64,000 nt of DNA from Setoptus koraiensis (taxonomy: Eukaryota; Animalia; Arthropoda), in assembly GCA_048013815.1 (NCBI GenBank), contig CM106585.1, positions 6,510,001 through 6,574,000 of the forward strand. Direction: 5' to 3'. The position numbers and the translations under genes were made by a program. Shown here in pieces: positions 11,903-58,386 of the stretch (positions within the stretch are counted from its first letter, which is position 1; each line of letters starts with the position of its first letter). Below the pieces are notes generated by a model. It ran no database searches and was not told the DNA's origin. It saw nothing but the letters and a program-made list of their open reading frames with translations.

Positions 11903-12169
11903 CTAAATGTGGAATAGGATAAGACTATCTGATGTTGCGCGACGATCACAATTGGGACAGATACAATTGTACTGCTTCTTTGTCTTGGTCAATGGCTGAC
12001 CAAACACATCTAAACCGGCCTCGTCCTTAATTTTGCATGACTCATCGCCGGCGTCCGTAAATATTAATCCCATCTTAGCCGCTCGATGAATTTGTAGGCA
12101 CTCACTGAATATCACATCGTCGATCAAATTAGCTAATATGTCATCTGGACTCGGGCCTGCGCTGGACAT
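11903..12169 (-). pseudogene. SGF11: SAGA DUB subunit Sgf11/ATXN7L3, N-terminal half only; stops inside the zinc finger
   Basis: DDILANLIDDVIFSECLQIHRAAKMG...GLDVFGQP...CICPNC is the Sgf11 N-domain. The expected RFAPHLEKC half is absent and a stop follows 14 codons after CPNC. Confidence 0.7.
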
Positions 12170-12544
12170 TCTGGTTCCTGTCCGAAAATTGAATGTAATA
12201 ATATATGCAATGATACCATCATATTATTATGCAATATCGAAAAATGTATGATGGAATGAATGATAAACAAAATGGTATCAGCCGACCTCTCTTCATCGGC
12301 ATGCGGCTTCTGCACTGTCAGTACGTGCGTGCGTTTGTTTGTGTTTGTTTGGTGTTTGTGTTTATAAAAAGAAAACACATGACTCGCTCGATTTTCCGAA
12401 ATCTGATCCATTTTAATGTTCTTTTTGAAAGGAAAAATGAACAACTTTAGTGACAATTACACAAAACTAACACTAATTATTAAGAATATAATTGATTTCC
12501 AGCTATCACCATCAAAGTAACTGATAGACCAAATTCCATCCAAT

Positions 12545-13150
12545 ATGGCTGCTATTCATGTAAGCTGTTGCTCGAGGCGTGCCACAACACCAACCTATCT
12601 ATTCGATCCAGATAAACTGACAAAATTAAAATCTTGGCCCACAATCAAGCAAGAACTTGGCAAGTACAATCTTGTCGCTCGACCTCTTTGTTCGGACGAT
12701 TATCACAATGGTTACCTAGAATTATTAAGTCAATTAACAGTCGTTGGTGAGATTGACTCGACCACATTCGCGAGACGATTCGACGAAATGAAACAAATCA
12801 ACATGAATGCCAGCGTCGATCATTATGTAATTGTTGTGATCGAGGATTCCGTTGCCAGGAAGATAGTCGGGGCATCAACATTGTTTCTCGAGTTTAAGTT
12901 CATCCATCAATGTGCCTACAGAGCACGTCTTGAAGATGTTGCCGTTTTGGACAGTTATAGAGGAAAACGAATTGGTCAAATTGTAGTGAAATTAATCGTA
13001 GATTTGGCCAATGAGGTGTATCATTGCTACAAGATTAGTCTGGATTGTAAAGATGATTTAGTGCCTTTCTACGAGAAGAATGATTTCAAATTACAATGCC
13101 ACATGATGGGCATAAGATTTGATGAGGCTACACTAGCCATAGACGGGTAG
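12545..13150 (+). CDS. GNPNAT1: Glucosamine-6-phosphate N-acetyltransferase
   Basis: ARPLCSDDYHNGYLELLSQLT, EFKFIH...RARLEDVAV...RGKRIG, CYKISLDCKDDLVPFYEK. Confidence 0.95.
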   Translation: MAAIHVSCCSRRATTPTYLFDPDKLTKLKSWPTIKQELGKYNLVARPLCSDDYHNGYLELLSQLTVVGEIDSTTFARRFDEMKQINMNASVDHYVIVVIEDSVARKIVGASTLFLEFKFIHQCAYRARLEDVAVLDSYRGKRIGQIVVKLIVDLANEVYHCYKISLDCKDDLVPFYEKNDFKLQCHMMGIRFDEATLAIDG

Positions 13151-13189
13151 TGACTGTTGCAAACAAATTTTTATTCATATGAAATAAAA

Positions 13190-13328
13190 CTATCGTTCCA
13201 ATGATTTATTCCGCTGATGGATTTGGTTTTCTATCCATTGCAATGCATCCATCTGCGCGTTCAAAACCATTTCTATCTGATTGATGGGGTCAGTGGTGTC
13301 CTCTTCGGTGCTGGTATCATTCAGTCTT
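13190..13328 (-). pseudogene. NUP62: Isolated NUP62/Nsp1-like C-terminal coiled-coil exon (45 aa)
   Basis: RLNDTSTEEDTTDPINQIEMVLNAQMDALQWIENQI resembles the Nup62 tail (DPLQQICKILNAHMDSLQWID). It is preceded by a pyrimidine tract and AG (13330-13329). No upstream Nup62 exons are recognisable. Confidence 0.55.
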
Positions 13329-14201
13329 CTGGAATGGAAAAATCAGTATGGAGGTATCATTCAGTGAACATTGTAAGTGATTGTGGAACGTCCAACAGTG
13401 CACGATCTCATTGACTTTGTGTCATTCTATTGATATCTGTAATGTGTCCGTCGAAAAAGTTGCAGCAGAATAAATTGTTTCGTAACCAAAGCTCTTTATC
13501 TTGCATTTTCTTCTGGCTAGCATGATTAGCAGCTCTCTACAAAGTGCGCCCTCGCTCTGGATGCCGAAAATTGTGCAGGCGGGACGGATCGATCTCGACG
13601 GAAAGGCACAATCCCTCAGATGTAGGCGAACTTCGCACGAGTTATGATGGAGACAAATAGGCTCGTTTATGCATGCTTTCGAGGTCGAGCCTGCGGACAA
13701 TGGAATCGACTCTCTCATTGATTTGGTTGTATCCACCATCAAAAGCCTACTATTTGTTCTTGTTAGCGAGATATACCGAACATATCCTATTCCAATCGTT
13801 TCTCATAAAGCCGCGCAACGTGACGTGATATTTGCATAGCATAATGATACCCGGACATGGGTCTCAAATTTGGAATGGATAATCCAGGCCTCGAATCAAA
13901 TCGACACCCATTCTCCGGGTTAAAAGTTACAAAGTTCGGGACTCCACAGTTTCGATCCTCGCATAAGCTACTGTTTCATTCTCCTACGACCGTCTAAAAA
14001 GTAAACATCCCAACATTTTTCAACTCTACTGGCAGATTCATTGTGGCATCCACTTCTTTACAGCAAGTCGATAATTAAATTGAGCGGTGCAGACATAGTA
14101 CACAGACGGGTAGTCGGATAAAGATGGAAATTAAACCGATTTCGCCTAACATATTCATAATGCTACACCAAGTTGTTCTTGACTGTCTCGAAGTGGCCGG
14201 A

Positions 14202-16622
14202 TCATTCATTCAAAAGCTTCAGCAGCAGCCATCTCAAATGTCGTGCCTGATAAGTTACAGTATCCTTTCCGGAAACGAAATCATCATCCGAAAAATGCTC
14301 AAAAGGGTTCACCAAAATAGATAAATTGTCACCGATGAAGGCCTCTGTTTGATGCTGGTCTGCTGGTGTTTGTTTTGAGCTAGCTTTGATTGTGAGTCCA
14401 TATTTCTCGCATTCCATTAGAAAATCTATACATTGCATCAGAACATTGTCACTAACCACAGTGGTCATTTTACAAATATTTTCCAGCATTGATAATATGC
14501 ATCTTTTTGCGTAGAACCATGTGTCTCGGTTGAGTTTCTTTCCAACGGGTTCTACACTCTTTATTATTCGTGTTATACCAAACTCATAATTGGATTTGAC
14601 ACAGTATAATGTTCCAATAACTAGATTGATGATGCACGAATGCATTGGTATAGTTTGTTGATCGTAAGTTGACAATCTACTCTGATGATCTATGTCACTA
14701 TCGTAGATGATATTGTCGATTGTTTGTTTTGTCTCTAAATCGTCCTCCAGCGAGCTTAATCTGGGCCCATTCTTCAACTTGATCAGGGTCTGTCTAGCCA
14801 CTTGTCTAGAGTACTTTTTTTGTTGCAACCGATTGTTGTCATTATCATCAGATTGGTCGGTGGTTTTTTCGCCATTTACAAGTTCGTTCTCCTCCAACTC
14901 AACCTTTCTCATGAGTTCTTGAGCGTCCTCATTTTGGCCGATAAGCACATAAGACACACAAAGGTTGGCTATAATCATTGGATCAACGCTGAGTAAATGT
15001 TTGAAGTTGTCTCTGATGAATGGTTCGTAAAACAGAAGAACCTCTTTAAATTTTGAGTCTTGCATGTAGAGTGTATGGGCAACATTTAATTTCCAGACAT
15101 GGTGGTCGCTAAATATCTCCGCTGTCTTCCTGAACAATCTTTCCAGCGCCTTGAAATGATTTCCAGTCCAAAGAATGTGACCTAAGCTCATAAGTATCTC
15201 AATTCCAAACTCCAATTCGTTATTGTAAGTAATTTTGTTACTTTCTATCACTGCCAAGTTTGTAGCTGTCTCATCGGTCGATTCATTTTTCAGTGTTCTC
15301 ACTTTTTCCATTTGTTTCTCTAGCAATTGATACAGTTTCCTGTAGCCATCCGTATCAGACGAATGTTTAGTTATAACACCATCCAAGAACATGAACATAT
15401 CCTCACTGAGATATCTAAAAGTAATTTGTTCATCCTCCATAGTGAGTCTCGTAGCAATATCAAAGTGATTATTAGTGATATATATCAATAGTATATTAAA
15501 AAATGCCTCATCGGGCACTGTAGCATCCTGTGTTGTTGCGCTCATCAATAAGAATCTTAACTTGTCAAAACTTGATAGTGGTTCGCAATCTAAATTAATA
15601 AGGCCCAAATTGTGCAAAGTTGTCGGATCGAGCTCGTCCTGATTTCTTGGTGGCATGTCGGTGAGGGCTTGCTTTGCACTAGCTAAATCGTCCAGGAGAT
15701 AATAGATTGAGGCCTTCAGATTGAATGCCCCGATCAAGCACGATTGTTCCAGCTTGCGTGAGTTGCCTACGCTATTTATCTCTAAATCATTTGTATTTGA
15801 GCCAATGTTTAACTCGGGATAAGCGGACACACCGAATGCTATGATCTCACCAACGAGATCCAAAGCCTTGTTGTAATTCTCCAGCATGTAATAATTAAGA
15901 GCCAGATTATACTTTATATCTAAAAGTGATTTTTCGTCGTGATTATCATTATTGTTTGGCCTCAACTCGCTCATCAATGATTGAAGGATTGCTATAGCTT
16001 CATGATGTAGTTTTTGTTTGGTCAAACAAGAGGCCAGATTGAACATTCTATTCTGAAGTGCAGACCTATTTTCCGGATAAGATGAGTTCACTTTGGAATC
16101 GAACAGACTTCGAGCAGCTGCGATGTCGCCTTGACTAAACTTAATCAAAGCCTGAAGCGTCTTTAGTCTGGATTTATAGTCCTGACAAGACTCGATGGAA
16201 AGATGTTGATTGGTGTTGATTGATTCCCTATTTGCTTCATCAATATATATATCAGATATAATTTTGTCCAGTTTACGATCTAAACTAATAGTCGCCCTAA
16301 TAGAGAGATCGAACTCTCCACTTGAATACAAAGCATTTGCGTAGTTGTAACTATGCTCCAGATATCGTGATAATTTTGCCTTGTCTGATGCCATGGTTTC
16401 TCTTGGTTGCTCCAAGATAATTTTTAACTGGTTATAACAATTACACGCCTCACTATAATCTTGGGCCATGTAGTAACAATAACCCATGAGAGATAACAAA
16501 GATTCCGAAGGTTCATGCTCAATGGAGATAGCTTGCAACTGTTTGATGGCATACAAATAATTGCCCTTCTTGATTTCACCGTAAACAATCGAAGTCAACG
16601 ATGTAACTCTTGCGGCCGACAT
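14202..16622 (-). CDS. TTC30: Tetratricopeptide repeat protein 30 / IFT70 (fleer/DYF-1)
   Basis: LEQSCLIGAFNLKASIYY, LTDMPPRNQDELDPTTLHN, WKLNVAHTLYMQDSKFKE, HSCIINLVIGTLYCVKSNYEFGITRIIKS; first ATG at 16622. Confidence 0.95.
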   Translation of the reverse strand: MSAARVTSLTSIVYGEIKKGNYLYAIKQLQAISIEHEPSESLLSLMGYCYYMAQDYSEACNCYNQLKIILEQPRETMASDKAKLSRYLEHSYNYANALYSSGEFDLSIRATISLDRKLDKIISDIYIDEANRESINTNQHLSIESCQDYKSRLKTLQALIKFSQGDIAAARSLFDSKVNSSYPENRSALQNRMFNLASCLTKQKLHHEAIAILQSLMSELRPNNNDNHDEKSLLDIKYNLALNYYMLENYNKALDLVGEIIAFGVSAYPELNIGSNTNDLEINSVGNSRKLEQSCLIGAFNLKASIYYLLDDLASAKQALTDMPPRNQDELDPTTLHNLGLINLDCEPLSSFDKLRFLLMSATTQDATVPDEAFFNILLIYITNNHFDIATRLTMEDEQITFRYLSEDMFMFLDGVITKHSSDTDGYRKLYQLLEKQMEKVRTLKNESTDETATNLAVIESNKITYNNELEFGIEILMSLGHILWTGNHFKALERLFRKTAEIFSDHHVWKLNVAHTLYMQDSKFKEVLLFYEPFIRDNFKHLLSVDPMIIANLCVSYVLIGQNEDAQELMRKVELEENELVNGEKTTDQSDDNDNNRLQQKKYSRQVARQTLIKLKNGPRLSSLEDDLETKQTIDNIIYDSDIDHQSRLSTYDQQTIPMHSCIINLVIGTLYCVKSNYEFGITRIIKSVEPVGKKLNRDTWFYAKRCILSMLENICKMTTVVSDNVLMQCIDFLMECEKYGLTIKASSKQTPADQHQTEAFIGDNLSILVNPFEHFSDDDFVSGKDTVTYQARHLRWLLLKLLNE

Positions 16623-16908
16623 GGCTAATATAAATTCAGTTACATCTGTCCAGCAACGTAATGATGGCAATTACTTCATGATTGAAGTTAAATCAAATAT
16701 TGTTTAGAATGATTGTCCTAATAAAGAACGAGCGAACAAATGAATGAGAAAAAAAGGGAAACGTCAGGTTTCCATGACTACCAAGAGCAGAAAATATTAA
16801 CATATAATACTGTTGATAATAAAGACTCAATAATTGAACAGCTTTTATTGGTGGTAGAAAAAAAATCACGACTTTGTTTTTGTTACTCCACAGTTACTCA
16901 GATAAATA

Positions 16909-16998
16909 CTAGTTGTTGGCCGATCTTTTGGCCGACCTTGATGGCATTCTCCCCATGCCCATACATTTCTCGAGGTGTGGCGCTAGCCTGGCAGCGGC
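16909..16998 (-). CDS. SGF11: Sgf11 C-terminal half of the zinc finger, running into the N gap
   Basis: Hand translation AAARLAPHLEKCMGMGRMPSRSAKRSANN* matches Sgf11 ASRFAPHLEKCxGMGRNSSR. Confidence 0.88.
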   Translation of the reverse strand, partial: AAARLAPHLEKCMGMGRMPSRSAKRSANN

Positions 16999-17498
16999 NN
17001 NNNNNNNNNNNNNNNNNNNNNNNNNNNNNNNNNNNNNNNNNNNNNNNNNNNNNNNNNNNNNNNNNNNNNNNNNNNNNNNNNNNNNNNNNNNNNNNNNNNN
17101 NNNNNNNNNNNNNNNNNNNNNNNNNNNNNNNNNNNNNNNNNNNNNNNNNNNNNNNNNNNNNNNNNNNNNNNNNNNNNNNNNNNNNNNNNNNNNNNNNNNN
17201 NNNNNNNNNNNNNNNNNNNNNNNNNNNNNNNNNNNNNNNNNNNNNNNNNNNNNNNNNNNNNNNNNNNNNNNNNNNNNNNNNNNNNNNNNNNNNNNNNNNN
17301 NNNNNNNNNNNNNNNNNNNNNNNNNNNNNNNNNNNNNNNNNNNNNNNNNNNNNNNNNNNNNNNNNNNNNNNNNNNNNNNNNNNNNNNNNNNNNNNNNNNN
17401 NNNNNNNNNNNNNNNNNNNNNNNNNNNNNNNNNNNNNNNNNNNNNNNNNNNNNNNNNNNNNNNNNNNNNNNNNNNNNNNNNNNNNNNNNNNNNNNNNN
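16999..17498. other. Assembly gap (500 N)
   Basis: Run of N. Confidence 1.
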
Positions 17499-17851
17499 TG
17501 GGGGGTTCATTGGTGTTTTTAGGTGTGGTGTTGGGGAGGGTGTTGGAATCGATGTAGAGGAGGTCCTATCTTTCTGCCTTACTGGGGGGGGGGGGGTACG
17601 GGATAGTGGGGTATTTATGGTCAACATGCAAAGGTCACTTGGGAATTTCGATAAAATTTGTAATGATGGTTTGGGGGTGTATAGGTGGGTATTACGATGA
17701 GTGTAGGGGAGTGACGTGAGGTGGACATGAGTGTCGGGTTGTATTATGGGGATGTAGGAGGAATGGTGGTTGGGAGGGGGAGATGGGTTGGGGAGGGGAC
17801 GGCTGGGGGAGAGGCTGGGGGGCCGGGTTGGGGGGGAGAGGGGAATGCGGG

Positions 17852-17891
<40 letters not shown>

Positions 17892-18984
17892 GGGGGGGGG
17901 GGTGTGATCTGCTAGGGATGTGGTGTGGGTGGTTGAGATTGGGTTTGGGGTGTGGGGGTGTTGTGTTGTTGGGGGGATGGGGTGTTTGAATGTGGGGAGT
18001 GGGGGTTTTAGGACTAGAGACTCTCGAGATTACGTGGGCCAAGAATATCGCCTGGTGACCGTGGCAAAGGGGGCTATGCTAAAAGTAGGGGGGGGGGGGG
18101 GGTTGGGGGGGGTGGGGGTGGGGGGGGGGGGGCGGGGGGGGTGGGGGGGTCAGGAGTTGCACTGCTCCCGCTTGAGGGGTGGGGGGGGGGGCGGGGGGGG
18201 GACTGACCAGCAGGAACACATAGCACTAAGAAATTCCCGTGCGATACAGTACTACAGCTGACCATGCGACTAAGATAAACACTGCGTTTACTAAACGCGA
18301 TACAATGATCCACAAAGCGGAAACCACATATATTACAGTCTTGTTAGTAACGAAGTAGCTCATCATTTTAATATGTAATACGTAGTATCTCTCCCACCCA
18401 TAGATATGAAGTCTAATCATCAAGCTTGAAAACTATCCCATGATGGCAGTAAGAAAAACTGTGATTTCACCAGTACGTCCACTCTCACCAAACCATTTCG
18501 AAACATTTTTACTAGAAATTAGCGGCATCTGAACCGCAAGTCCGTTCGTCTGTCTGCAGCGTAGCGCGCGCGCTTTTGCTCAAGAGCGGTTTATGTATGG
18601 TGGTTGCCATTCTCTACGCCCCTCTCCCCCCCCCATGCGCGGCGCCAACCCGCAATCTGCTATCCGCACACCCCCATCAATACCCTCAAGTTGAGACTCC
18701 AACCCTCTCAAGCGATGGAGAAATAGGGGTGGGGGGGGGGGGGAGGGGGGTGGGGGCCAAGATTTGCAACACACCACCCCAACCGATGCACCTAACACGG
18801 CGCCGCTAACCCGCTCCACAAGGATGGGACCCAGCGGGGGGGGGCTCACCACCACATACACCGCAAATGCAAACCTTGGGGCAACACCGCACGAGCGGGG
18901 GGGGGGGGTGGGGGGGGGGGGGGGGTGGGGGGGCGGGGGAGGGGGGGGGTATCTATAATGGGGGAGGGAGGGTGGGGGGTGGGG

Positions 18985-19021
<37 letters not shown>

Positions 19022-22585: not shown

Positions 22586-23039
22586 AAGGACGCACATATT
22601 GATTAAGTATGTCTATGTTATCAAACTCTAGTATTATTATATAAATATAGCCTTAATGTAAAGGACATAGATATTTGACGATTATGTTCGCTGACTTTAT
22701 TAGTTAATTACAGCTCGCTAAAATAAGAGTTGGCAGTTAGAATCCAGCATAGTGATAATATAATTATTAGAACTTACTAATTATTAACTTATATGAAAAC
22801 AATCGTTGATACTGTAGTACAAAGACAGAATAATATAGAGGTTGAGCATCAATTTACTAGTTCGAACTTCCTCTTATAAATAACGCTGTTACTCAAAAAA
22901 AGTCCCACTTGTATGACTCACCTCGCGACATGAATCCTGAGACACCCTGTCCAGTTCAACACTTTCTAATGTTGATAGCTATAATACATAAATTTAGAGT
23001 CAGTTGGCTCCATTCTGCCGAAAAGTTGAGACACCCCTA

Positions 23040-30415: not shown

Positions 30416-31454
30416 AATGTAAACAAATAGTTAATCGACGGCAATGGCCGTTTAGTTTTTATTGTTCGGTGGGGCACACTGGCTGGCTGGCCGGTAGTAG
30501 ATGCACCATGGCTAATAAATGAAGAGATAAATGGAGGATAAATTGGTGGTCGAATTGTGATCAGAAATGCAACACTTTGCATGTGCTTTAGGCGATCATA
30601 TGGCATGGTGAGACGAAGAAAAAAGCAAAACAAAATAATGGAAAACGGCGCAGTCGCGAGTGTGTGCGCCCAATCAGTTATTTGTGTTCGAATTCGTGTT
30701 ATTGGTGGGTTACATTTCGCATGCAACGACCACCATTGGCAGCGCGTTTCCTCTGCATTTTTTGGTTGTATATTTCTGGACACCTATTGAGAGCGTCTCG
30801 CGAAATGCCCGCCAGCAATGGTATTACCAGCGCTGGCACCAATAGTGACAAACTAATGGCATTGCCACAGGTAACAGTGACATTATTGATCATTCAACAA
30901 AACAAAAGGACGATTTTCAAGAGATTGTGTAACTATGCGCCACTGATTCGCTAGCGGTGGCGCCACCTCGAGTCGTCATCGCACACAATTGGTGGTCAAG
31001 GTGGTGAAAATGTTCCATTGCAAGTGTCTCACTCACAAGTGTTCATACAGTGAGTTACAACGAACTTGTGGAGTCACATGGTTCGTGCATGAGAATTTTA
31101 TACGCTCACGTTTGGTGTCGTTCCAACCACGACCACTCGAACAAAACTCAAGATCGTATCGGAAATTGCAAACAGCCTCGACAGAAACATGGATGACAAA
31201 GCCAATACAAGTCACCAAGTGTGACTGATCCAATTGCGATTAATTTTGCAGAGATGGCACGAGATCTCTTGCGAATTAGGTCTTGTCCTTTGCAGGATAA
31301 AGAGTGCGCTTTGCATAATCAAGTCCGCACATAGAACACGCACTAATTTTCGAAAGTTTCGAATTTGAAGGCGAACAAATCGGCCACAGACAGCCGCAGG
31401 ATGTTTGGCCTTTGGTGCGGTTGCCTGGCAAGGCGCTCGCTCGCACCTCGGGAG

Positions 31455-31465
31455 GCCGCCATTTT
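31455..31465 (+). promoter_or_regulatory. YY1/Pleiohomeotic consensus site GCCGCCATTTT
   Basis: Exact extended YY1 consensus immediately before the tandem repeat. Confidence 0.35.
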
Positions 31466-31466
31466 T

Positions 31467-31634
31467 GGTCGGTTTGTTCGACGTCTTTGGTCGGTTTGTT
31501 CGACGTTTTGGGTCGGTTTGTTCGACGTCTTTGGTCGGTTTGTTCGACGTCTTTGGTCGGTTTGTTCGACGTTTTGGGTCGGTTTGTTCGACGTCTTTGG
31601 TTGGTTTGTTCGACGTCTTTGGTTGGTTTGTTCG
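31467..31634. repeat. 22-bp CpG-rich minisatellite, about 7.6 copies (GGTCGGTTTGTTCGACGTCTTT with variants)
   Basis: Units start at 31467, 31489, 31511, 31533, 31555, 31577, 31599 and 31621; variant order A-B-A-A-B-A-A'-partial. Confidence 0.95.
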
Positions 31635-31876
31635 TCGGTCGGGGCTGTCGTCCACGTGAGTGTGGTTTCGAAGACGGAGCAGTTGCATTCGACGAGAATG
31701 TCGCTGAACTGACAACGTTGTGGCAACGAGGTTGCCTACACCGTGTAGGCTACACGTTCGTTGCGATGTCTATATACACCGTGTATAATGGACTTGTATA
31801 AAATGTAGCGCAAGTAAAGCAGTAGCAGCGGCAGCAGACTGTTACTGGCAGCAATGCGGTAAGGCAACGCCGACAA

Positions 31877-31909
<33 letters not shown>

Positions 31910-32092
31910 GTGCGCGCGTGTGTGCAATCGAACAAACCAGCTAGCGAACATGTGAGTTTGTGCGCTCGAATTGTGTGAAAAAGAACAAACGAGCAAGCGA
32001 ACTATTGATCGAGCTACCGAACAAGCGCAACAGATGAAAATGTTGCCGCTGCAGCAGTGTGTGTGCGCTAGCAGTCATGCTCACATTGGGCT

Positions 32093-32137
<45 letters not shown>

Positions 32138-32245
32138 TAGTGTAGCAGTGTGAATAGAATGAAATGTTTGAATCGTCGCTCGCTTGTCGCGCCGTCTACT
32201 GCTACTCACTGCATTAGTCTCCCTCTCCCTCGCTCGCAAGCATTG

Positions 32246-32288
<43 letters not shown>

Positions 32289-32290
32289 GC
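31877..32290. repeat. Cluster of (TG)n/(CA)n microsatellites upstream of the HSF-like gene
   Basis: Dinucleotide runs at about 31877-31925, 32095-32135 and 32253-32290. Confidence 0.9.
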
Positions 32291-32772
32291 ACACTTGCAC
32301 ATTCTGGCAGTATCAGCAGTGCAGCAATAGAATTTTGCTGCTCGGCTAGCGCTGCCAAAGCGGCCGCTTGGGCTGCTGTTAAAGGCTAGCTAAAGGGAAG
32401 GGGGAAAGGAAACAAACGCACGCACCGAACTGTTTGTATTGCTCGTGCATTACTAGGTTCTTTGCACTACTACAATACAACAACTACACATTCAACAATT
32501 GCTACGACAAATTCTATTCGCTTGGCGTTCGTCACTCGGCACCGTCCTCCGCTTGTAGCTGATAGCTGTAACATAATCGTCGCAGATTTAACATATATTA
32601 TAATTATTCTCTTATTAGTCACCACCATTAAGTTATTATCGTCGTCCTCTAGAGGTACTTGGTGCTGACTCGGTTACAACTATTATCACCACATTACTAC
32701 TATTATTATCGCCGTCCAACCGCTCACAAAGACACAGTGAGAGAGCGAGGGAGATAGAGAGACATTTGTATC

Positions 32773-33574
32773 ATGAAGAAGCAAACGGCCTATAACTCAA
32801 CACCAACGGCAACAACCATTGATCAGCAACAACAACAACAAACGATAAACCATAATCACCCGGCTAAAACCACCATCACAAAACCCATAGATGACTATCC
32901 CATTACACCCAACACCCCGCTAGAGGGCAAGAGGCAATTGTTTCCATTGAAACTGTGGGATCTCGTCAATTTGCCAGAACCATACAATCCCGGTGTCAAA
33001 TGGTCAGACGATGGCACGAAAATAATCGTCGACAGGCAAAGCCTGCAAAATAGCTATCTCAAAAAGGATGATACAATATTCAGGACTAGAAGCGTTGACT
33101 CATTCGTCAGGCAATTGCATTTTTATGGCTTTCGCAAAACCGTTGGACCAAAAGAGTCAGACACTGTTGTTTATTATCGTCACGAATGCTTTCAACGAGA
33201 AAAACCAGATCTATTGCTCAAAATGAAGCGCCAATACAAGTCACGCAGGCCCTCTTGCACGTTACAACAACAAAACAACCATGCCATGCCAATTATGCAG
33301 CAACACCAACCACTATTACAACAACAACAACAACAACAGGGCCCGCAACAAGTACAAAATATTGTACAAAACCCAAATATTATTAAACAACCACTAAACA
33401 TCATTAAAACCGCAAGCACCATGGTGCAACCGCAAATCAACAATATCAACAATATTAACATCAACAACATCAATAACAGCAACAACATGCAAACCACAAT
33501 GCAACACGCCATGCAATCAGCCATGCAACAAGCTATGCAAACAGCCATGCAACAACAATTACAACAACAACAAC

Positions 33575-37664: not shown

Positions 37665-38130
37665 AGGAGTTTTTGAATGCACAAACAATCTCTTCATAGG
37701 TCAAAGGACGAGAGGGATTCGTCATTGTCTCAGTTGATTTGCTGCCTCATAACGCTGGTAGCGCCCTTCACATTGTACACACAATATTTTGAGAATTTGA
37801 TGCTGTCGAGTGTCAGGGTAAGTATTCTTATCCGGACGATTGGCTCTACTGAACTCGTACCTATATTTTTGAATGCAGAGAGGTATGAATATTGAGTGTG
37901 GATTCCTTTGTTGCGATCTCTTGATAAACTCAACGCAATGTGTGAGGCATTATTGAGCTTCATCATCGGAGCCTGACATCAATTTCATGGTTAGAACATC
38001 GACTTTTGGGCGTTATTGTTGACGAGTAACATGCTGGATGAGTACTATATCCTCCTCGAGAGAACACTTTCCAAGCTGGAATTCATGGGATGCTTCTCAA
38101 ACTTAGCAACCAAGTTGCGTATAGGACCAT
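37665..38130 (-). pseudogene. AGK: Decayed duplicate of AGK exon 2 (about 53855-54180) plus a piece of the AGK-ABCF1 spacer (about 55025-55100)
   Basis: Direct nucleotide similarity, e.g. cttattcggacgaatggctc vs cttatccggacgattggctc and ttttgggcgttattgttgac. It translates FIPLCIQKYRYEFSRANRP vs FIPLDIQKYWYKFKRAIRP, with frameshifts and stops. Confidence 0.88.
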
Positions 38131-38205
38131 GTAGAATTTGTGTCGATCTTTTGCTGATTACATCGCGGGGCTCCTGTATCCAGCATCATTTCGGATCATT
38201 AATCC

Positions 38206-39143
<938 letters not shown>

Positions 39144-39157
39144 TAAAAAGCACTTAT

Positions 39158-39400
39158 GGACACTTGACATCTACGTCAGGTGAACGGCAAGTTAATCACA
39201 GTGCCAGGATAGCCAAATTTGATCAAGACAGTGGACAACATCTGACTACAGGAGGAAATCTTAATTGCAAGCCAGTTGTCATTATCAAACTATGCTCGTT
39301 TGGTTCACAACACGCTCATGCGAATCTGTGCAAAGACTACAAAGAAACAGGATTCTGTGGCTACTCCTGCATTTATCTTCATGATAGATGAGATTACAAG
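39158..39400 (+). pseudogene. Mosaic of an ABCF1 NBD2 fragment (~57844-58035) and a second RNF113A CCCH fragment
   Basis: [30 protein letters not shown] vs ABCF1 [30 protein letters not shown], followed by [22 protein letters not shown]. Confidence 0.9.
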
Positions 39401-39453
39401 CAATGAAAATATATATAATGGAATTTTGCACGGGTCCTTGGATTGTTTATACT

Positions 39454-48605: not shown

Positions 48606-48759
48606 TGTTAAGTTGTACGAAGACAATATGGTGAAAGACAAGAGATCTAATACGATTTATATTTACTAATAGTCGGAATGAAGTCCACCGAACTGTAAAT
48701 AGATCGATTGCAAATCGGGCGAACAAGACACGAGAGAGAAAAAACAACTATGACGTATA

Positions 48760-49280
48760 GCGCGAAATCTAAAATGTGTTTTTTCCATATCCACGCGTGA
48801 ATAACAGCTCCTAATCAAATGACTGGGCCACTATCGATCGCAGTTTGTGAATAGTAAGAACAGTTTTTTGTTGCGCGTTGCACAAGCATCTGCTAAAAAG
48901 AAGAATCAAACCGCATGTTCTCCATCCAAACCATGTGAGCTTTGTTTTTGTATGAGAATGTACTCTTGAGGTCTATTCCCGACAAGACTTGTGGGGCACT
49001 AAGGCTGGCATCTTTCTCGTTAACATTGGATCTTTACGATATTAATTATGGCAGGCAGCAGGCTTGCAAACTTCGGCCCTATATTCTCTAGGTAAGTGTC
49101 TCACTATAGACCCTCCACCATTTTCTTGATACGACTCATCATCAATAATCTCATCCAACAGGATGACAGGTCTCTTGGAATCCAGCACCATCAAGGAGGG
49201 TCCTACATGGTATACCGTGCACAGATTTCGCCCTCTCGTACATCACAGCTCACTATCCACAGTGGAAATCAAAGAGAAAC
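48760..49280 (+). repeat. Inverted duplicate of the MRPS23 promoter, exon 1, intron and start of exon 2 (partner at ~50370-50905)
   Basis: Exon 1 is 41/44 nt identical; the intron ends gtaagtg...ctcatccaacag are shared; upstream aatcaaaccgcat...aaccatgtg...ttgtttttgta is shared. Confidence 0.92.
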
Positions 49281-50236
49281 CACCTAAAGAGTACTGTGAA
49301 CCGACCAAAAAGTCTAAACGAACCAAGACTCGTGCGATCTTCGAGCTGATGCGGTGGCACAAGCCCATCGGTACCTTCTTAACATTAACGCCAGCATTAT
49401 GGTCTGTTGGTCTAGTCACACCATCAACGCAATTATTTCCAGACCCTTATATTCTGGCGGTTTTCACAGCTGGAGCGATTGTAGCTAGGGGTATCGGATG
49501 TACGATGAATGATATATTGGATAGAGATTTTGACAGGCAAGTGGAAAGAACTAAGGATCGGCCCATAGCTTGCGGTGACATATCCACCAAAGAGGCTCTA
49601 GTCTATCTAGCTATTCAATCTTCATTAGGTCTCTTTATATTGTGCCTGAACAATGCTCTAGTGATAAAATTGGGATTATTTAGTGGGCTTCTGATTGCCA
49701 CTTATCCATTATTCAAACGATTTACCTACTGGCCCCAAGTAATGTTGGCACTGACGTTTAATTGGGGTGTACTCATGGGCTTTGCCGCTGTCAGAGGGAC
49801 ATTAGAACTTGGTGATATTCCCGTTTTTGCACCTATATACTTAGGTTCAATTTTTTGGACTCTCTACTATGACACGATATACGCGCATCAAGATAAAAGT
49901 GACGACGAAATTATTGGGATAAAGTCAGCTGCCTTGAAGCTTGGGTCGCATACCAAAAAATTTCTCAACGCAATGAATCTAGGAATGTTCTCTAATTTGG
50001 CCATGGCTGGTATCATGACTGAACAATTGTGGCCTTACTATTTATCAGTGATTGCCTCAAATCTATTCCTCGCCCAACAAACAAAAAATGTTGATTTAGA
50101 TAATTCAGAGGATTGTTGGAAGCAGTTCAATAGTCAAAAGTATATTGGTCTTACTATATTAGCAGGGGTGTTAACTAGCCTAGCCTTAAAATCTAGACGC
50201 AACAGTGAAAATGTAGAGTCAAGTTGTAATCAATAA
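49048..50236 (+). CDS. COQ2: 4-hydroxybenzoate polyprenyltransferase COQ2 with an MRPS23-derived N-terminus, 372 aa (exons 49048-49091, 49162-50236)
   Basis: UbiA motifs MRWHKPIGT, GCTMNDILDRDFDRQVERTKDRPIA and YDTIYAHQDKSDD. A 70-nt phase-2 intron joins MAGSRLANFGPIFSR to the ORF. Confidence 0.95.
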
Positions 50237-50277
50237 TAAACGGGAATCTAAATATATTCTGGCAAACATGGTGATGA

Positions 50278-50610
50278 CTATTTATTTGACTTTTCCGTCG
50301 TATAAGCGGACAGTTGAGGCAACGGCTTTTTGGCCAGCTCGTAATCTTCTTTATATACTATCTCTCTTATCTCCAAAGTAGAAGGTGTCCGATTTGCATT
50401 GGGTTCCACCGGCGGGGGAAATCTTTTGTACACAGTATACCAAATCGGAACTTCCTTAACAGCGCCGGATTCTATGAGACCTGTCATTCTGTTGGATGAG
50501 AATAGCGATGATGAGATGCTGACCTAAGACGAGGCGTGAACACGGTGAGTGCATTGAGTCACTTACCTAGAGAATATCGAGCCAAAGTTTGCAAGCCTGC
50601 TGCCTGCCAT
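50278..50610 (-). CDS. MRPS23: Mitochondrial ribosomal protein S23, short 84-aa form (exons 50610-50567, 50488-50278)
   Basis: MAGSRLANFGSIFSRMTGLIESGAVKEVPIWYTVYKRFPP.VEP...IREIVYKED matches mS23 (MAGSRLETVGSIFSR...PLWFDVY.AFPP..EP...I.Y.ED); 78-nt intron. Confidence 0.88.
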
Positions 50611-51101
50611 AGTTTTTCTGCCGAATAGATTTTTATCGTACAGGTCCTATATCAGCACGTGGAAAGTTGTGTCTGGAGATTATTTTTCGGGATATGAGTC
50701 GCAAGGACATTCGAGTGTTTTCTTCTACAAAAACAATCGTGAAACACACATGGTTCATAGAGAATGCGGTTTGATTTTTATCTCTTGCACTTGCCTGTGT
50801 AGCACAAACCACAACAAACAGTTGTTGCCATGAATAGTGGACCACGATTCATGGTCGGACTAGTATCATATGCATGCGTGTAAACACATTTAGTTCTCTC
50901 GCGCACCACACCAGGCGCAGTAATCCTCGTCGTTATTTACCCGTGAATTTGGTAAAAACAAATTTCAGATTTCGCGCTAGGCCCAATGTTGTTTCTCTGC
51001 GGCTCCATTTCACTCTCGTCTGATATTCAATCTGTCGCTATCGAAATAGCTTCACGAAAACGTACTCTATATTAGAATTTTTGTTGTTATCAACAGAAAC
51101 A

Positions 51102-51971: not shown

Positions 51972-52663
51972 TGTCCAATTGATTACACATGCTTGATTGT
52001 CCATACCAAAACTAATCATGAATTAATCTTCATGAGCACCACACACAAACATATTGTAAAATACACACTAGTGGTCAGTGCTTATCCAAGACTTACTTAT
52101 ATTATTATCATCTATGCAATGTATAGCTGTTTCATGTATGTTAACGGCATCATACCAACTCAGGCCTAGTTGAAGAAATGCCATTCCATGCACCATGTGT
52201 GCATGATTGACTGTAAAATAAAATGCGCCACCTGTATGAATCTTCATATTACATAACAAGACAAGCAGGTGACTGCACTCAACTGCCCTTTTGGGCTACA
52301 CTTTCTACTTCATGTATGCAATGTGTTTAGGCGTGCTGATAGCACTCAAACAAATGTTGTGGGTTCTTCGTTGTTGTGTAACGTTCATATAACAAAACAG
52401 TTCTTTTTTATTTCGAAGCTAAACCGTTCCTTAGTTAGTCAGATCGGACATGAATTTATTCAAGATTCGGATAATATCATATAGGTAGGAGCAGTTGCCA
52501 CACCTTTGGGTTATAGGGAGGCATAAGCCTAAATTGTGCAATAGTGCAACAGAGATTAAGAGCAAAAACATATATCTCTTTAATTAACATAGAAACAATT
52601 AAACGCATTCTGTTAGAATAATCAAACAAGATATAAGCCCATCTAAGTGCATATACATTCGGC

Positions 52664-53236
52664 ATGATGTTCAAACTGCCAATCAGGTCAAACCTAACAT
52701 TTTTATTACTGGTGGCAGTTATTCTTGAACTACTCATTGTTCAAGATGCTGTTGATTGCATTCGGTGTTACAGTTGCGATAGTAAAAATGACTTAGAATG
52801 TAGTGAAAAGTTTCCCTTGAATACTCGCTTGCAGCCCCAACAATGTGACAATATTACCAACGCTGCTTATTGCATCAAGACTACCAATGTGTATGCAGGT
52901 AATTTACCATTTACTGTAATGAAACTTGATTCCTCCAACAGAAGGCTACCATGAATGATTCACCTAAATCTTTATTTTCATATAAATTTTAATTTAGGCG
53001 AGCTTGGAACTAAAAGATTTTGTTCTGCCACAGACCAGGGGAATTATTGCAAATATGTCCGACAACCAACGGGCGACAGGGAATATAGAAGCTGCGTTCT
53101 GACATGTTCTAGCGATGCTTGCAATGGTGCTCCATCGCTAAAAGACTACGATCATTCACCAAGGTTCCTTCTATTATTCATATCTCATATCACCATGGCG
53201 ATAATGACCTATTCCATTTGTAATCGTAGAGACTGA
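52664..53236 (+). CDS. cold: Ly6/uPAR GPI-anchored protein, Coiled-like (exons 52664-52898, 52998-53236)
   Basis: Signal peptide, three-finger Cys pattern CYSC...GTKRFCS...GNYCKYVR...YRSCVLTCSSDACN, hydrophobic GPI tail and a 99-nt phase-1 intron. The orthologue name is from memory. Confidence 0.8.
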
Positions 53237-53413
53237 TCTATCAACCCAATGACGAAAACTCAAATAATGTTGAATCTGTCCCGCTATATCCTGGGCTGAA
53301 TTGCAATACATATTGCCCTTATCTATTTTTGACAACGAATCTCAAAATTCCATAATAATAAGTTAGGATATGCTACAAGTCTACTAGATCGTATTTTCGA
53401 TCCCAGTAAATCA

Positions 53414-54793
53414 TCAAATATTCGCACTTCCTGTGAAAATGGTAATATTCTTGAGCGTTGATAGTTCAACAGCTCTGCAAACTGTCGGTTCGCCATCGAC
53501 AATGAATTTAGTTCTTTTATCTTCGACATCTACCTCCTCCGATTGTTTTTCATTCTGATTCTGAGTGACAAGTGTGGGTTCAGGAAGTTCATCACACTTC
53601 ACATGAATACGCACGTTTTGAGCTTTGATTTCCTCACTGGGTAAATAATCATCATCTTTGTGGATTGAGAGTTTGATTGAACTATGCCCCCCAGAGATTG
53701 CTTCAATGTTTGTTATATCCGTGGGTTTTAAATCTGTCCATAAGTTGCAGTCATGGTTTACTCGGTTGGCTAACAATAAATTCATCCTCTCTTCCTCGGT
53801 TTGAGTTGGTCTAGTAGATATAGGAATTAGACTAGCCCACCATCTCTTGGAGGGAGTATTTTTATTTTCAACGAATACCTCATCTGTGATTTTGTGACTC
53901 TCATAACACTGAGAGCACCCTTCACAATAGTTTGAGACTTCGATGCGGTCTATCGTGGGGAAAGTATGCTTATTCGGACGAATGGCTCTTTTGAACTTGT
54001 ACCAATATTTTTGAATGTCAAGAGGTATGAATGAAGATTCCTTTGTTGAGATCTCTTGATAAACTCCATACTTCAATCCTCTGAGACAATATTGCACGTC
54101 AGCATTGGTATCTGAGATGGATTTCATTGTTAAAACATCAAACTTTTGGGCGTTATTGTTGACCAAAGACATTGTGGATGATATCAAGAACCTGACACGG
54201 AAAAATGGTGTAAGTTAACAATGAGCAATGACAGTAGTTTAAATAGATAATATAAGTTGAACTTACTCTTTGGTGCTACTCCGAGGTAAGTTTTGATGTA
54301 CATGCTGAGCGATACTATTCTTTTTACCGACCGGTATAATGGCAATCGGATATGCTTTAGAAGCCGAGGCCGCATCGGGACGACTTAACAAACCATTCAG
54401 TACCTCATGGACAGTACCATCTCCACCAACAACGGCAACACAGTCACAGTTGGACATAATCTTCATGAGCTCTTTGGCTTGGCCCGGTGATTCGGTTTCT
54501 ACCAGACTAACTTTTAAGCCAGCCAAGTGAAGTAGAGGCTCAACAAATTTTGTATAATACTTTTTGGATTTGCGTTTTCCAGATACTGGATTCAAAATGA
54601 CAGTTACGTGCCTGGGCTGACTCCGTAGTGGCAGCGGTTGATTTCCTAATTCCTGAGCCTTTAAACAGTTTTGTTTCATGATTTGACGATCGCCAATATA
54701 GTTGTACAGTCGATAAGCCCCATAGTTACCTACTATAGTGATGAAAGTTGTTTTCTTCCAATTATTCCTTAGAACTGTAAAAAGACGGGCCAT
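53414..54793 (-). CDS. AGK: Acylglycerol kinase (Mulk), 434 aa (exons 54793-54267, 54191-53414)
   Basis: LRNNWKKT, VTVILNPVSG, VVGGDGTVHEVLNGL; 75-nt GTAAGT...AG intron. Confidence 0.93.
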
Positions 54794-55668
54794 ATTCTCT
54801 GAATCTATTTGTTTGTATTGTTATCCTACGTATTGTTTGAACATTAGATACATCAGAGTAGTGAATGAGCGAAGTAGGTTAGGCAAAAAATGACAACAAA
54901 TGAGAAGCGATAACCACATGTAAATAATGTTTTCGCCATGCGTCTTCATTATGATTTTGTAGAATTGACTTGTAGCTTGCAAGGTGCGAGTGCGGTCACG
55001 GTCTACTCCCCTGTCTCCCACGAACCTCTCCTTGGGAGAACAATTTTCAAGCGGGAATTCCTAGGATGCCTCTCAAACTTTGCAAAGAAGTGTGTAGTCA
55101 TTTCGGATTGTGATCATCTTGCACCAGAGATCGCCCCTTCAAAAGTAACGTGTATCACAACACGTGATGATTTTGCTCACCATTCGATTATCGAACTATC
55201 GGTATGATCACTGGTAAATCTCCAATTATCTAACTTGTTAGGACACGCTATTGCTCTCCACTCTGAACACGTGTAGTATTCTCCCTTTTCGAGCACGTAA
55301 CACACAGAGCTTTCACTCATAGGACTATGATGACCAGCTGACATTCACAAGACAAAGGATGACTAGCACTTACTGACAATTCGTGAGAGACTATCGAGCC
55401 AATTGCTCTGCAGGCGACCATTGTGTTATAGTGTTTAACTTTGAAGCTCATCAGTACAATAAACCATTTTAGATATTACTCCTGAACAAACCATTCATTA
55501 CGAGACTTCCATTGCACGATCTCTACAGGTGTAATAGTTTCTCTATCGAATCTGCTGATTTAGATCTTGTGAGCCAGTTTATACAGTCGCGCAAAGCATG
55601 AATGTAAGAGTTATGCAAATCACAGTATATTCGCACAAGGTGGAATGAACAGTCAAAAACGGGATCAA

Positions 55669-56293
55669 TAGTGATCGGGGGAGAGCGGGAGAGCGTCTCC
55701 CAAATGGGAGGTTCCCCTCTCCCCTCCCGTTCAAATTTTTGGGAGAGGGAGAAAAAATCTCCCCCTCCCGTTTCAAACTCGGGGAAGGGGAGAGGGCATC
55801 TCCCCCTCCCTCTCCCGCTCGGGGAGACGGGAGAGGGCATCTCCCTCTCCCCCTCCCGCTCGGGGAGATGAGAGAGGGCATCTCCCGGGGAGAAATCCGT
55901 CTCCCGGGGAGAGCCCGGGGAGACGATTTCTCCTGCAGACACTGCAACAGGCTCACTAGTTTTGCCCATATTCAGCAATTGACGAGGACAATTAACAGTG
56001 GACACTGATATTTTGCCAAAAAAACCAGTGAATTGTCGTGGCGAGTGCCATGCTGACGAGATCGTCTCCCCGGGCTCTCCCCGGGAGACGGATCTCTCCC
56101 CGGGAGATTCCCTATCCCGTCTCCCCGAGCGGGAGAGGGAGAGGGAATCTCCCTCTCCCCCTCCCAAAGCGGGAGACGGGAGGGGGAGACTCCCTCTTCC
56201 CTCTCTTGACAGCGGGAGGGGGAGATTTTTTCTCCCTCTCCCCTCTATACAAGGCGGGAGGGGGAGAGGGAGAGGGCTCTCCCCCGATCACTA
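55669..56293. mobile_element. Non-autonomous hAT-type MITE, 625 bp
   Basis: Perfect 18-bp TIR TAGTGATCGGGGGAGAGC (55669-55686; 56276-56293) and 8-bp TSD GGGATCAA (55661-55668; 56294-56301). The empty site is seen in the paralogous copy at 38206-38213. Confidence 0.95.
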
Positions 56294-56544
56294 GGGATCA
56301 AATGTGATTTGAATCACCCGCGCGCGAATCACACGAAATGCCTACCGTGATGACACCGGCTCCTCGGCACCGTGCAATTCATTCTCAACTCTGATCTATG
56401 CCCGGTGAGGGAAGATATCAACAATTATTGGAACTCAACACAATATTCAGAATCGAATTTGATGGTCATTTTAGACCTTAGAACTTTTAGAACTTTTAGA
56501 ACTTTTTATACTCTATAATCAACGTGACAGATATAAAAGTGATC

Positions 56545-58386
56545 ATGAGTGCTCCTAGTAAATCTCAAGGCGATGGAGACATCAGCAGGAAGGAGAAGAG
56601 GAAGATGAAACTTCAGCAAAAGCACGAAGCTGAAATGGCCGAACTATCGGCCAGAGTTGGATCCCTTGATGCTACATTTTCAGTGTCCTTCTCCAATCCT
56701 GGTGGTGGCAAAGGTCAGTCTCAGGTGATCGATAATGCCATCAAGATTGACAATTTCAACATGTCGGCAGCAGGCAAGGCATTGCTAACAGATGCTAATC
56801 TCAGTATTACATTCGGCAGACGCTATGGTCTTGTTGGCCCCAATGGACACGGAAAAACTACATTGTTGCGTCATATTGCCGACAAAGCTGCGCTTGGTCT
56901 ACCTAAAGACCTTGATATACTTCTCTGCGAGCAAGAAGTTCTGGCCGATGAAACACCGGCTGTTCAAGTAGTCATGAAAGCTGATAAAAGACGCATGAAG
57001 CTCGAGGAAGAATTGCAAAAATTGGAAAAAAACGACGACGCCAAAGAGACAGATGATAAGGACAGGCATGCTGACAGAATAAATAAACTTTACGAAGAAT
57101 TGGAAAGTCTTGAAGCGGACAAAGCGGAGCCGAAGGCCAGGAGAATACTGGCTGGTCTTGGTTTTACAACTCCGGAAATGCAGGACCGACCTACTGTCAA
57201 CTTTAGTGGAGGTTGGCGTATGCGTGTTTCATTAGCAAGAGCCCTTTTTATGGAACCCAGTATTCTTCTGTTGGATGAGCCTACTAACCATCTCGACTTG
57301 AATGCTGTCATCTGGTTGGATCATTATCTTAGTGGCTGGAAGAAAACACTATTGATAGTATCTCACGACCAATCGTTTCTTGATAATGTTTGCACAGATA
57401 TTATTCACCTCGATATGAAAAGACTATTCTATTACAGAGGAAACTATTCACAATTTAGAAAGATGTTGGAACAAAAACGGCGCGAACAGGTTAAAGATTA
57501 CGAGCAACAACAGAAAAAATTGAAAAACCTTAAGCAAAGTGGAAAATCTGGCAAGCAGGCAGAGAAGAAGGTAAAGGAAGATAAAACCAGAAAGGTTGGA
57601 GAGGTTCAGCAAATAGATTTATTGGAAAAACCAAAAGAATATATTGTCAAATTCAAATTTACGGAACCACCAGAGTTGAAGTCCGAAACGGTGATTTTAG
57701 GTTTACATGATGTCTATTTCAGGTATAACGAAAATCAACCCATGCTCTTCAAAGATATCAATTTTGGTATCGATCTAAAGTCTCGTATTGCCATAGTAGG
57801 ACCGAACGGTGTTGGAAAATCAACTTTCCTTAAATTATTAAACGGTGACTTGACACCTACATCAGGCGAACGACAAGTCAATCACAGAGCCAGGATAGCC
57901 AAATTCGATCAGCACAGTGGAGAACATCTGACTACTGAAGAAAATCCTACTCAGTATTTGCAAAGATTATTCAACTTGGATTATCAAAGCGCTAGAAAAC
58001 AATTAGGTTCGTTTGGTTTGGTATCGCATGCTCATACAATTCCGAATGTGCAGCTTAGTGGAGGACAAAAATCACGAGTGGCCCTCTGCGAGATGGCCTT
58101 ACAAGGTCCACACGTTCTTATTCTCGATGAGCCTACAAACAATCTAGATCTAGAGTCTATCGATGCTTTAGCAGATGCATTGAATTCTTTCAAAGGTGGT
58201 GTCGTAATTGTTACTCACGACGAACGACTGATCCGAGCAACAGATTGCAATTTATACGTTATTGAAGATCAAAGTATAGCTGAAATCGACGGTGACTTTG
58301 ATTCTTATAGAGAGGAGATATTAAAAGATCTCGGCGAGGTTGTTAACAATCCTTCGTTATCTGCCCAAATAGCTGGAGCTGTTTAA
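56545..58386 (+). CDS. ABCF1: ABC-F family translation factor ABCF1, 613 aa, intronless
   Basis: Two NBDs ([26 protein letters not shown]; [17 protein letters not shown]) with ABCF1-type [18 protein letters not shown] and KPKEYIVKF. Confidence 0.96.

Follow-up and report, generated by a model that had tools for sequence, protein, structure and literature searches.

Two single-copy genes of Setoptus koraiensis are headed by copies of the front ends of neighbouring genes

Results

Genes and features of the window

We analysed a stretch of 64,000 nucleotides (nt) from Setoptus koraiensis, corresponding to C1:6510001-6574000 of the 48.8-Mb two-contig genome (contig CM106585.1 of assembly GCA_048013815.1, forward strand) and referred to here as the window. 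Within it, the genes COQ2 and RNF113A each begin with a diverged copy of the front of a nearby gene, MRPS23 and ABCF1, respectively. The gene map was drawn from lists of open reading frames (ORFs) and Pfam matches (Table 1), and positions are counted along the window unless they carry the prefix C2, for chromosome 2, or the handle of another sequence. The window is gene-dense and intron-poor, with about 40% G+C; nearly all of its genes are single ORFs, and AGK has two exons. The COQ2 protein has its nearest named relatives in Aceria tosichella and Fragariocoptes setiger, both eriophyoid mites, which places the species in this group. Genome searches found COQ2, MRPS23, RNF113A and ABCF1 each to be single-copy. 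A preliminary description of this DNA had proposed that the promoter and first codons of a neighbouring housekeeping gene were duplicated locally and came to head an unrelated gene, and our comparisons bear this out for at least two genes in the window.

Table 1. Positions of genes, copied segments and donor segments in the window
Feature	Position	Strand	Basis or detail
Captured COQ2 upstream region, inverted copy of MRPS23 upstream region	48742-49047	+	48742-48805 vs 50994-50932, 80-85%; 48851-49312 vs 50831-50326
Captured COQ2 coding exon 1	49048-49091	+	ATG + 14 2/3 codons (MAGSRLANFGPIFSR), ends AG|GTAAGT
Captured 70-nt COQ2 intron, GTAAGT...AACAG	49092-49161	+	Donor and acceptor conserved in both arms
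Captured start of COQ2 exon 2, ~50 MRPS23-derived codons	49162-49312	+	Alignment to MRPS23 arm
Ancestral COQ2 body, UbiA prenyltransferase	49313-50236	+	PF01040, E 7e-56; sole COQ2 of the genome
Donor MRPS23 and upstream region	50278-50994	-	Exon 1 50610-50567, intron 50566-50489, exon 2 50488-50278
Relics of AGK exon 2 and AGK upstream region, pseudogenic	37735-38150	-	In-frame stop and frameshift
Captured ABCF1 module	38206-38498	+	~215 nt upstream, ATG 38421, 26 codons ending ..KKVQ
Ancestral RNF113A body, codon 27 to double stop, CCCH + RING	38499-39146	+	Pfam; orthology with sister species L044 428-1074
ABCF1 body relic (amino acids 429-467), directly after RNF113A stop codons	39143-39263	+	Alignment; absent in sister species
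Broken second RNF113A CCCH finger and ancestral 3′ flank	39317-39445	+	Alignment; stop codon and 6-nt deletion
Donor piece, 5′ part of AGK exon 2	53887-54181	-	Sensitive comparison
Donor segment of ABCF1, upstream region and codons 1-25	56294-56622	+	Left edge abuts multi-copy inverted-repeat element
Donor piece in ABCF1 body	57848-57949	+	Self-comparison
RNF113A (CCCH + RING)	38421-39143	+	ORF list/Pfam
Claudin-like gene	from 39454	-	ORF list/Pfam
COQ2 (UbiA) ORF	49163-50236	+	ORF list/Pfam
MRPS23 ORF	50278-50487	-	ORF list/Pfam
AGK, two exons	53414-54793	-	ORF list/Pfam; DAGK_cat in exon 1
ABCF1	56545-58386	+	ORF list/Pfam
Truncated Sgf11-like ORF	11903-12169	-	ORF list; no Pfam recognition
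GNA1-like acetyltransferase	12545-13150	+	ORF list/Pfam
TPR protein (TTC30)	14202-16670	-	ORF list/Pfam
Circularly permuted 5-kb block: Sgf11 5′ half, GNA1, TTC30, Sgf11 3′ half	11942-16998		99.3-100% identity to chromosome 2; ends at N gap

The front of COQ2 is an inverted copy of the front of MRPS23

COQ2 begins with a diverged copy, in inverted orientation, of the front of MRPS23, the gene with which it lies tail to tail. In a self-comparison of the window, 49044-49233 matches 50614-50414 in inverted orientation with 76% identity (E 5e-30), and a more sensitive search widens the match to 48742-49312 against 50326-50994. The module occurs in only these two copies in the whole genome. Its share of COQ2 comprises about 300 nt of upstream DNA, a coding exon of 15 codons, the intron that follows it and about 50 codons more, after which the UbiA prenyltransferase body begins. 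The start ATG lies at 49048 in COQ2 and at 50610 in MRPS23, the introns of 70 and 78 nt, respectively, both end in AACAG, and reading on through COQ2 exon 1 meets a stop just past the donor site. When both arms are read in this way, their best-conserved 60 nt prove to be a coding first exon and not a leader. The peptide of this exon, MAGSRLANFG(P/S)IFSR, matches the canonical start of MRPS23, which is uninterrupted in an outgroup eriophyoid (L047).

Conservation along the two arms is uneven. Identity is highest in exon 1, at 93%, and drops to 68% across the intron and 66% across the leading 50 codons of exon 2; the upstream region is 55% identical, relative to a baseline of 46% for an unrelated control comparison, and exon 1 of the two genes differs by a single amino-acid change. 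The 93% identity of exon 1 as compared with 66-68% in the intron and exon 2 indicates constraint on this exon in both genes. COQ2 is predicted to have 372 amino acids (aa) and MRPS23 84 aa; among the outgroups, models of COQ2 reach up to 372-388 aa, and the MRPS23 proteins have 82 and 91 aa. A Pfam scan of the COQ2 leader alone gave no match, so the relationship to MRPS23 rests on the DNA and peptide alignments, and the MRPS23 donor itself matches positions 13-67 of PF10484. Eriophyoid MRPS23 is strongly truncated, having only 82-91 aa and matching no more than positions 13-67 of a Pfam model with 128 positions (50278-50610 on the minus strand of the window, 4067-4315 in L046 and 7098-7373 in L047).

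The alignments identify the captured COQ2 leader as the N-terminus of another mitochondrial protein, MRPS23. Its 15-residue first exon contains two Arg and no acidic residue, and most likely serves as a mitochondrial import signal.

COQ2 remained at its ancestral locus

Comparison with about 43 eriophyoid-type COQ2 proteins places the change in time. An MRPS23-type start is found only in the closest relative, a protein of a sister species (P0001, 81% identical, Logan run SRR33593474). The other approximately 40 eriophyoid proteins carry unrelated leaders, which in the full-length models are rich in Arg and Ser like classical presequences. Orthology between the two species resumes at codon ~51 of the sister gene, as in S. 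koraiensis (window position 49316), and the sister species also has MRPS23 tail-to-tail beside COQ2, with the same MRPS23 stop codon. We conclude that the capture at COQ2 predates the split from the sister species. The sister contig that carries the locus (L045, 1422 nt) starts and ends in the repeat arms, at 1-121 and 1302-1422, which are 93% identical. The assembly of this contig broke at the repeat, so that the sister arms are probably longer and more alike than those of S. koraiensis.

Two outgroup eriophyoids, L046 and L047, retain the earlier state, in which COQ2 is followed by MRPS23 on the opposite strand, begins with a leader of its own and has a body that is likewise a single ORF; no inverted repeat is present at the locus in either. 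Because the tail-to-tail order and an ordinary leader are both found in these outgroups, COQ2 has never relocated relative to MRPS23 and its front end was replaced in situ. The ancestral upstream neighbour of COQ2 in both outgroups encodes a Pyr_redox_2 protein, which now lies at C2:11.84 Mb, and this break in synteny coincides with the replaced 5′ end of COQ2.

The front of RNF113A is a direct copy from the ABCF1 locus

RNF113A begins with a copy, in direct orientation, of the ABCF1 upstream region and 26 codons, the donor locus lying 18 kb away. The match between 38206-38488 and 56294-56609 (73% identity, E 2e-48) includes about 215 nt of upstream DNA and the first codons, and the ABCF1 module likewise has two copies only in the genome. 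The sharing of front ends that the preliminary description had seen in the MRPS23-COQ2 and ABCF1-RNF113A pairs is thus confirmed for both. A sensitive comparison uncovered further collinear pieces around RNF113A, pairing 37735-38041 with 53887-54181, 38052-38150 with 55028-55120 and 39162-39263 with 57848-57949. The first of these is a relic of AGK exon 2 that holds a stop and a frameshift, the second is a relic of the AGK upstream region, and together the AGK and ABCF1 relics keep the order of the donor locus, with decay. Since intergenic DNA and an exon of the neighbouring gene were copied along with the ABCF1 front, this was a duplication at the DNA level and not retroposition, and it took in at least 4 kb of the head-to-head AGK-ABCF1 locus.

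The junction with the RNF113A body is sharply placed. ABCF1 homology ends at 38488-38498 and orthology to the sister species begins at 38499, the two parts meeting in frame at the step from codon 26 (..KKVQ) to codon 27 (SSDESDDD..). The RNF113A of the sister species (P0121, likewise 240 aa) has an ordinary basic start and lies beside the same claudin genes. Two relics downstream of the S. koraiensis gene, one of the ABCF1 body and one of the RNF113A CCCH finger, are both absent from the sister RNF113A locus. The capture at RNF113A therefore postdates the split from the sister species. The second CCCH copy (39323-39400) is 85% identical and is joined to the ancestral RNF113A 3′ flank (39403-39445); with the ABCF1 relic at 86% identity, the two are of similar age. 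The succession of ABCF1, RNF113A, ABCF1 and RNF113A sequence, together with the similar ages of the relics, suggests one complex templated repair event.

Between AGK and ABCF1 lies an inverted-repeat element (55741-56294) that resembles a miniature inverted-repeat transposable element, with arms that are 77-87% complementary. Its segment 56240-56294 recurs with 92-95% identity at no fewer than five other sites on both chromosomes, and is absent from the copied block at RNF113A. This multi-copy element adjoins the ABCF1 module and could bring to mind a mobile element or repeat family that carries a promoter and start codon. However, the modules are not a transposon because each has exactly two copies in 48.8 Mb, and they encode the canonical N-termini of MRPS23 and ABCF1, with relics of donor exons travelling alongside the ABCF1 copy. 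We regard this explanation as practically negligible.

Relocation of the gene bodies and initiation downstream

In the preliminary description, intronless bodies were thought to have been attached to the duplicated modules, as a way for processed or relocated genes to gain promoters. Retrogenes in mammals and Drosophila recruit a nearby promoter or 5′ exon, and the present genes resemble them in having an intron-poor body behind a borrowed promoter or first exon. In such a scenario a retro-copied or relocated body would have joined the 5′ module of a duplicated neighbour, with later loss of the parent. Both bodies are single ORFs, and the RNF113A stretch has an insertion-like appearance, since it ends exactly at its stop codons and is set between codon 26 and amino acid 429 of ABCF1; the broken CCCH piece on the ancestral 3′ flank could then be a remnant of the original RNF113A. 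The locations of the genes argue otherwise. Unlike retrogenes, which occupy a new locus relative to their orthologues, both genes keep their ancestral downstream neighbours, a claudin gene for RNF113A and MRPS23 for COQ2, and the outgroup COQ2 and the sister RNF113A occupy these same loci with ordinary starts. Neither stop codon is followed by a poly-A tract, and donor intergenic DNA and relics of a neighbour's exon were copied together with the front of RNF113A. The lack of introns is uninformative, given that nearly all window genes are single ORFs and the COQ2 bodies of the outgroups are too, and the COQ2 module itself contains a coding exon and an intron. An intron-bearing COQ2 or RNF113A at another locus was not seen in L044, L046 or L047, and any re-copying of RNF113A moved it by less than 1 kb inside its own locus. 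An origin of the bodies by retroposition or relocation is therefore improbable; the bodies stayed in place and it is the fronts that were replaced.

A different question is whether the captured codons are translated at all. Capture could have supplied only a promoter and leader, with translation starting at a downstream Met (Met63 of the COQ2 ORF, Met46 of RNF113A) and the shared codons left untranslated. This would agree with several database models of COQ2, which begin at the equivalent Met of the motif MRWHKP, and with the fast divergence of the captured part of COQ2 exon 2 between the two species. We nevertheless consider it unlikely. In both species the COQ2 frame runs without a stop from its captured ATG through to the body, and exon 1 retains 93% identity with one amino-acid change. 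In addition, a COQ2 beginning at Met63 would be leaderless at a place where all full-length relatives carry 50-90 residues. For RNF113A, the junction is in frame and the total of 240 aa equals the length in the sister species.

Recurrence of re-headed genes in the genome

A pair-finding script was used that looks for local two-copy matches of 60-97% identity with aligned ORF starts in both copies and unrelated ORF bodies. Applied to the window, it returned exactly the COQ2 and RNF113A cases, with no false positives. Across about 95 kb of other loci, mostly in 3-kb pieces that give the script low power, it found no chimera and one ordinary tandem paralogue pair.

Recurrence was checked independently by whole-genome domain searches at candidate sites. 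At one of these, positions 2-47 of OPA3 and DNA_pol_A (POLG) share a 1165-aa frame that lies 0.8 kb from the true OPA3 on the opposite strand; at another, positions 1-53 of Ribosomal_L13 and mTERF share a 400-aa frame 3.4 kb from the true MRPL13, again on the opposite strand. A 204-aa frame that lies 7 kb from MRPS6 opens with a weak match to the N-terminus of Ribosomal_S6 (E 0.2), and a genome search with PF00238 (Ribosomal_L14) gave no third match. Donor and recipient are both mitochondrial in three of the four verified cases. Re-heading of genes thus recurs in this genome, with two cases in the window and two elsewhere that are recognised by their domain architecture (OPA3-POLG and MRPL13-mTERF), in keeping with the recurrence that had been proposed for it. 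Two papers on eriophyoid genomes make no mention of chimeric or re-headed genes.

The Sgf11 block and other features of the window

The preliminary description had listed a 5′ copy of Sgf11 as a further possible capture, and this did not hold up. Neither blastn nor tblastn found a second copy of the Sgf11 5′ region in the window. Instead, 11942-13143 matches C2:3379019-3377818 at 100% identity, and 13364-16998 matches C2:3382668-3379026 at 99.3%. At C2:3377818-3382668 the two pieces are adjacent and form an intact unit of GNA1 (minus strand), Sgf11 and TPR (both plus strand), which in the window has been opened inside Sgf11, with the 5′ 80 codons at 12169-11942 and the 3′ half against an N run at 16999-17498. 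The 80 codons of Sgf11 are followed by 8-9 codons of unrelated sequence and then by a stop, with no gene body attached. The candidate was rejected as the edge of a near-identical duplicated block to which nothing is fused.

To the left of the N run, 16945-16998 (minus strand) holds the 3′ half of the zinc finger that the truncated Sgf11 ORF lacks, and this half runs into the gap. To its right, about 2.7 kb (17499 to ~20250) has 63% G+C with long poly-G and poly-C runs and gave no match to the Sgf11 block of chromosome 2; it looks low-quality or artefactual rather than genomic. With the Sgf11 3′ half on the left and unrelated poly-G-rich sequence on the right, the two sides of the gap are not continuous. 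The chromosome 2 copy abuts an N gap of its own (3377318-3377817), and four intact Sgf11 genes lie within 110 kb on that chromosome (3.30-3.41 Mb). The block in the window may be a very recent segmental duplication that arose from a tandem array or by way of a circular intermediate; alternatively, it may be a repeat unit that was misplaced, or an error of scaffolding. Just before the chromosome 2 N gap, C2:3375595-3377174 (L031 595-2174) holds tandem paralogous ORFs of 165 and 162 aa that are 82% identical over 785 nt, a pair that is an ordinary complete tandem duplicate and not a chimera.

This suspect Sgf11-GNA1-TTC30 block, 99.3-100% identical to chromosome 2 and bordered by an N gap and poly-G-rich sequence, with its chromosome 2 copy at a gap as well, raises the concern that chimeric joins or misplaced contigs might also mimic the fusions at COQ2 and RNF113A. 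In contrast to the Sgf11 block, the copies in the two clear cases are 64-86% identical and so are not collapsed repeats, and these diverged copies occur nowhere else in the genome. Neither case touches the N gap of the window, and the COQ2 chimera is present in the independent assembly of the sister species. Assembly error, which the preliminary description had named as a possible refutation, is thus a very improbable source of the two fusions.

A tandem array of about 10 units of 22 nt (CGACGTCTTTGGTCGGTTTGTT; units 90-95% alike) occupies 31435-31676, about 1.1 kb upstream of an HSF-type gene at 32773. Long GT and CA microsatellites at 31867-32310 flank the array.

Discussion

Two conserved single-copy genes retained their ancestral position and coding body. 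Each lost its own upstream region and start codon together with the first 25-60 codons, and a DNA-level copy taken from the front of a gene close by stands in their place. We consider it probable that this came about through a repair-based mechanism followed by selection. In the proposed sequence of events, a break or rearrangement at the 5′ end of a gene would be repaired by copying nearby templates. At COQ2, a fold-back switch would have laid a mirror-image copy of MRPS23 before the COQ2 body; at RNF113A, several switches between ABCF1 and RNF113A templates may have produced the interleaved pieces. Selection would then have kept only in-frame products that brought a start codon, a functioning promoter and a leader that the protein tolerates.

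Several points weigh against this explanation. Use of the captured promoters, splicing of exon 1 and translation of the captured codons are read from conservation only, and we infer the import function of the COQ2 leader and the repair mechanism from sequence. A search for entries, RNA included, on the COQ2 and RNF113A of S. koraiensis itself returned none. Acidic residues occur in the captured portion of COQ2 exon 2, unlike in a classical presequence. Repair by template switching is deduced from the patchwork layout; the 25% divergence hides any microhomology at the junctions, and even at RNF113A, where the junction is placed to within 10 nt, it would be masked. A stepwise route, in which a large duplication was followed by several deletions, fits the layout equally well. 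The link between the break in synteny and the capture at COQ2 is a coincidence of position, to which a causal tie is added by interpretation. Finally, the two sister arms, for which 121 nt can be compared, are 93% identical as against 76% between the arms in S. koraiensis, and so need either gene conversion or a second independent capture. The sister arms are closer to each other than the 82% between species, and the COQ2 start resembles the MRPS23 of its own species, with WYAVY in the sister species and WYTV in S. koraiensis. The simplest reading seems to be gene conversion between the two sister arms, and a second independent capture may be the alternative.

The preliminary description had raised the possibility of an undescribed mode of genome remodelling, a suggestion that can be set aside because chimeric genes formed by partial duplication at the DNA level are common in surveys of C. 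elegans and Drosophila (PMC3449122), and chimeras from tandem duplication are known (PMC4069613). As in those chimeric duplicates (PMC3449122, PMC4069613), part of a gene including upstream DNA and first codons was copied and fused in frame, and homology breaks inside both ORFs. The donor can be identified in each case (MRPS23; ABCF1 together with AGK), and an outgroup distinguishes the ancestral from the derived state. A classical chimeric duplicate is an additional new gene beside which both parents persist, whereas here the recipient is the sole copy at its ancestral site, its own 5′ end is gone and only the donor parent is intact. The S. koraiensis genes are therefore a known kind of chimera, and what is unusual is their in situ replacement in single-copy essential genes and its recurrence.

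Template switching and the exchange of targeting signals offer two further comparisons. Fork stalling and template switching and microhomology-mediated break-induced replication (FoSTeS/MMBIR), along with fold-back inverted duplications, are complex rearrangements that arise by replicative template switching. The RNF113A locus resembles them in that short collinear pieces of a nearby locus are interleaved with pieces of the local gene, as does the inverted copy at a rearrangement breakpoint at COQ2. Unlike in those systems, the mechanism here is read from layout only, at a divergence of about 25% that is too old for microhomology. Plant mitochondrial presequences have reportedly been acquired by duplicating existing targeting signals, as is said of work by Kadowaki and colleagues in 1996. 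Similarly, an N-terminus was copied between nuclear genes for mitochondrial proteins from MRPS23 to COQ2, from OPA3 to POLG and from MRPL13 to mTERF, and for COQ2 the source of the leader is a gene for another mitochondrial protein. The plant genes were newly transferred from the mitochondrial genome and had no signal, whereas here, as far as sequence tells, a long-established nuclear gene swapped a working leader for that of its neighbour.

Annotation is affected as well: in such genomes gene models will mis-call starts, as at COQ2 exon 1, and may take chimeras for gene-merging artefacts. Comparison with the sister species gives the states before and after the event at RNF113A and, at COQ2, a state that both species share, which allows the events to be dated and their junctions compared. 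It is tempting to speculate, though only tentatively and with somewhat more doubt than conviction, that eriophyoid genomes undergo a systematic and unusually frequent in-place overwriting of the 5′ ends of essential genes by the promoters, starts and leaders of their neighbours, often as mirror images. Such overwriting would be tied to rearrangement and extreme compaction, and, with selection favouring swaps within the same compartment, it would mean that an animal swaps mitochondrial leaders among its genes. If the rate is truly high, the S. koraiensis genome would be a natural experiment on the survival of essential genes through rearrangement and the loss of their promoters while a genome shrinks. 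It would also test how interchangeable promoters and N-terminal leaders are, and show how animal genes exchange mitochondrial targeting signals.

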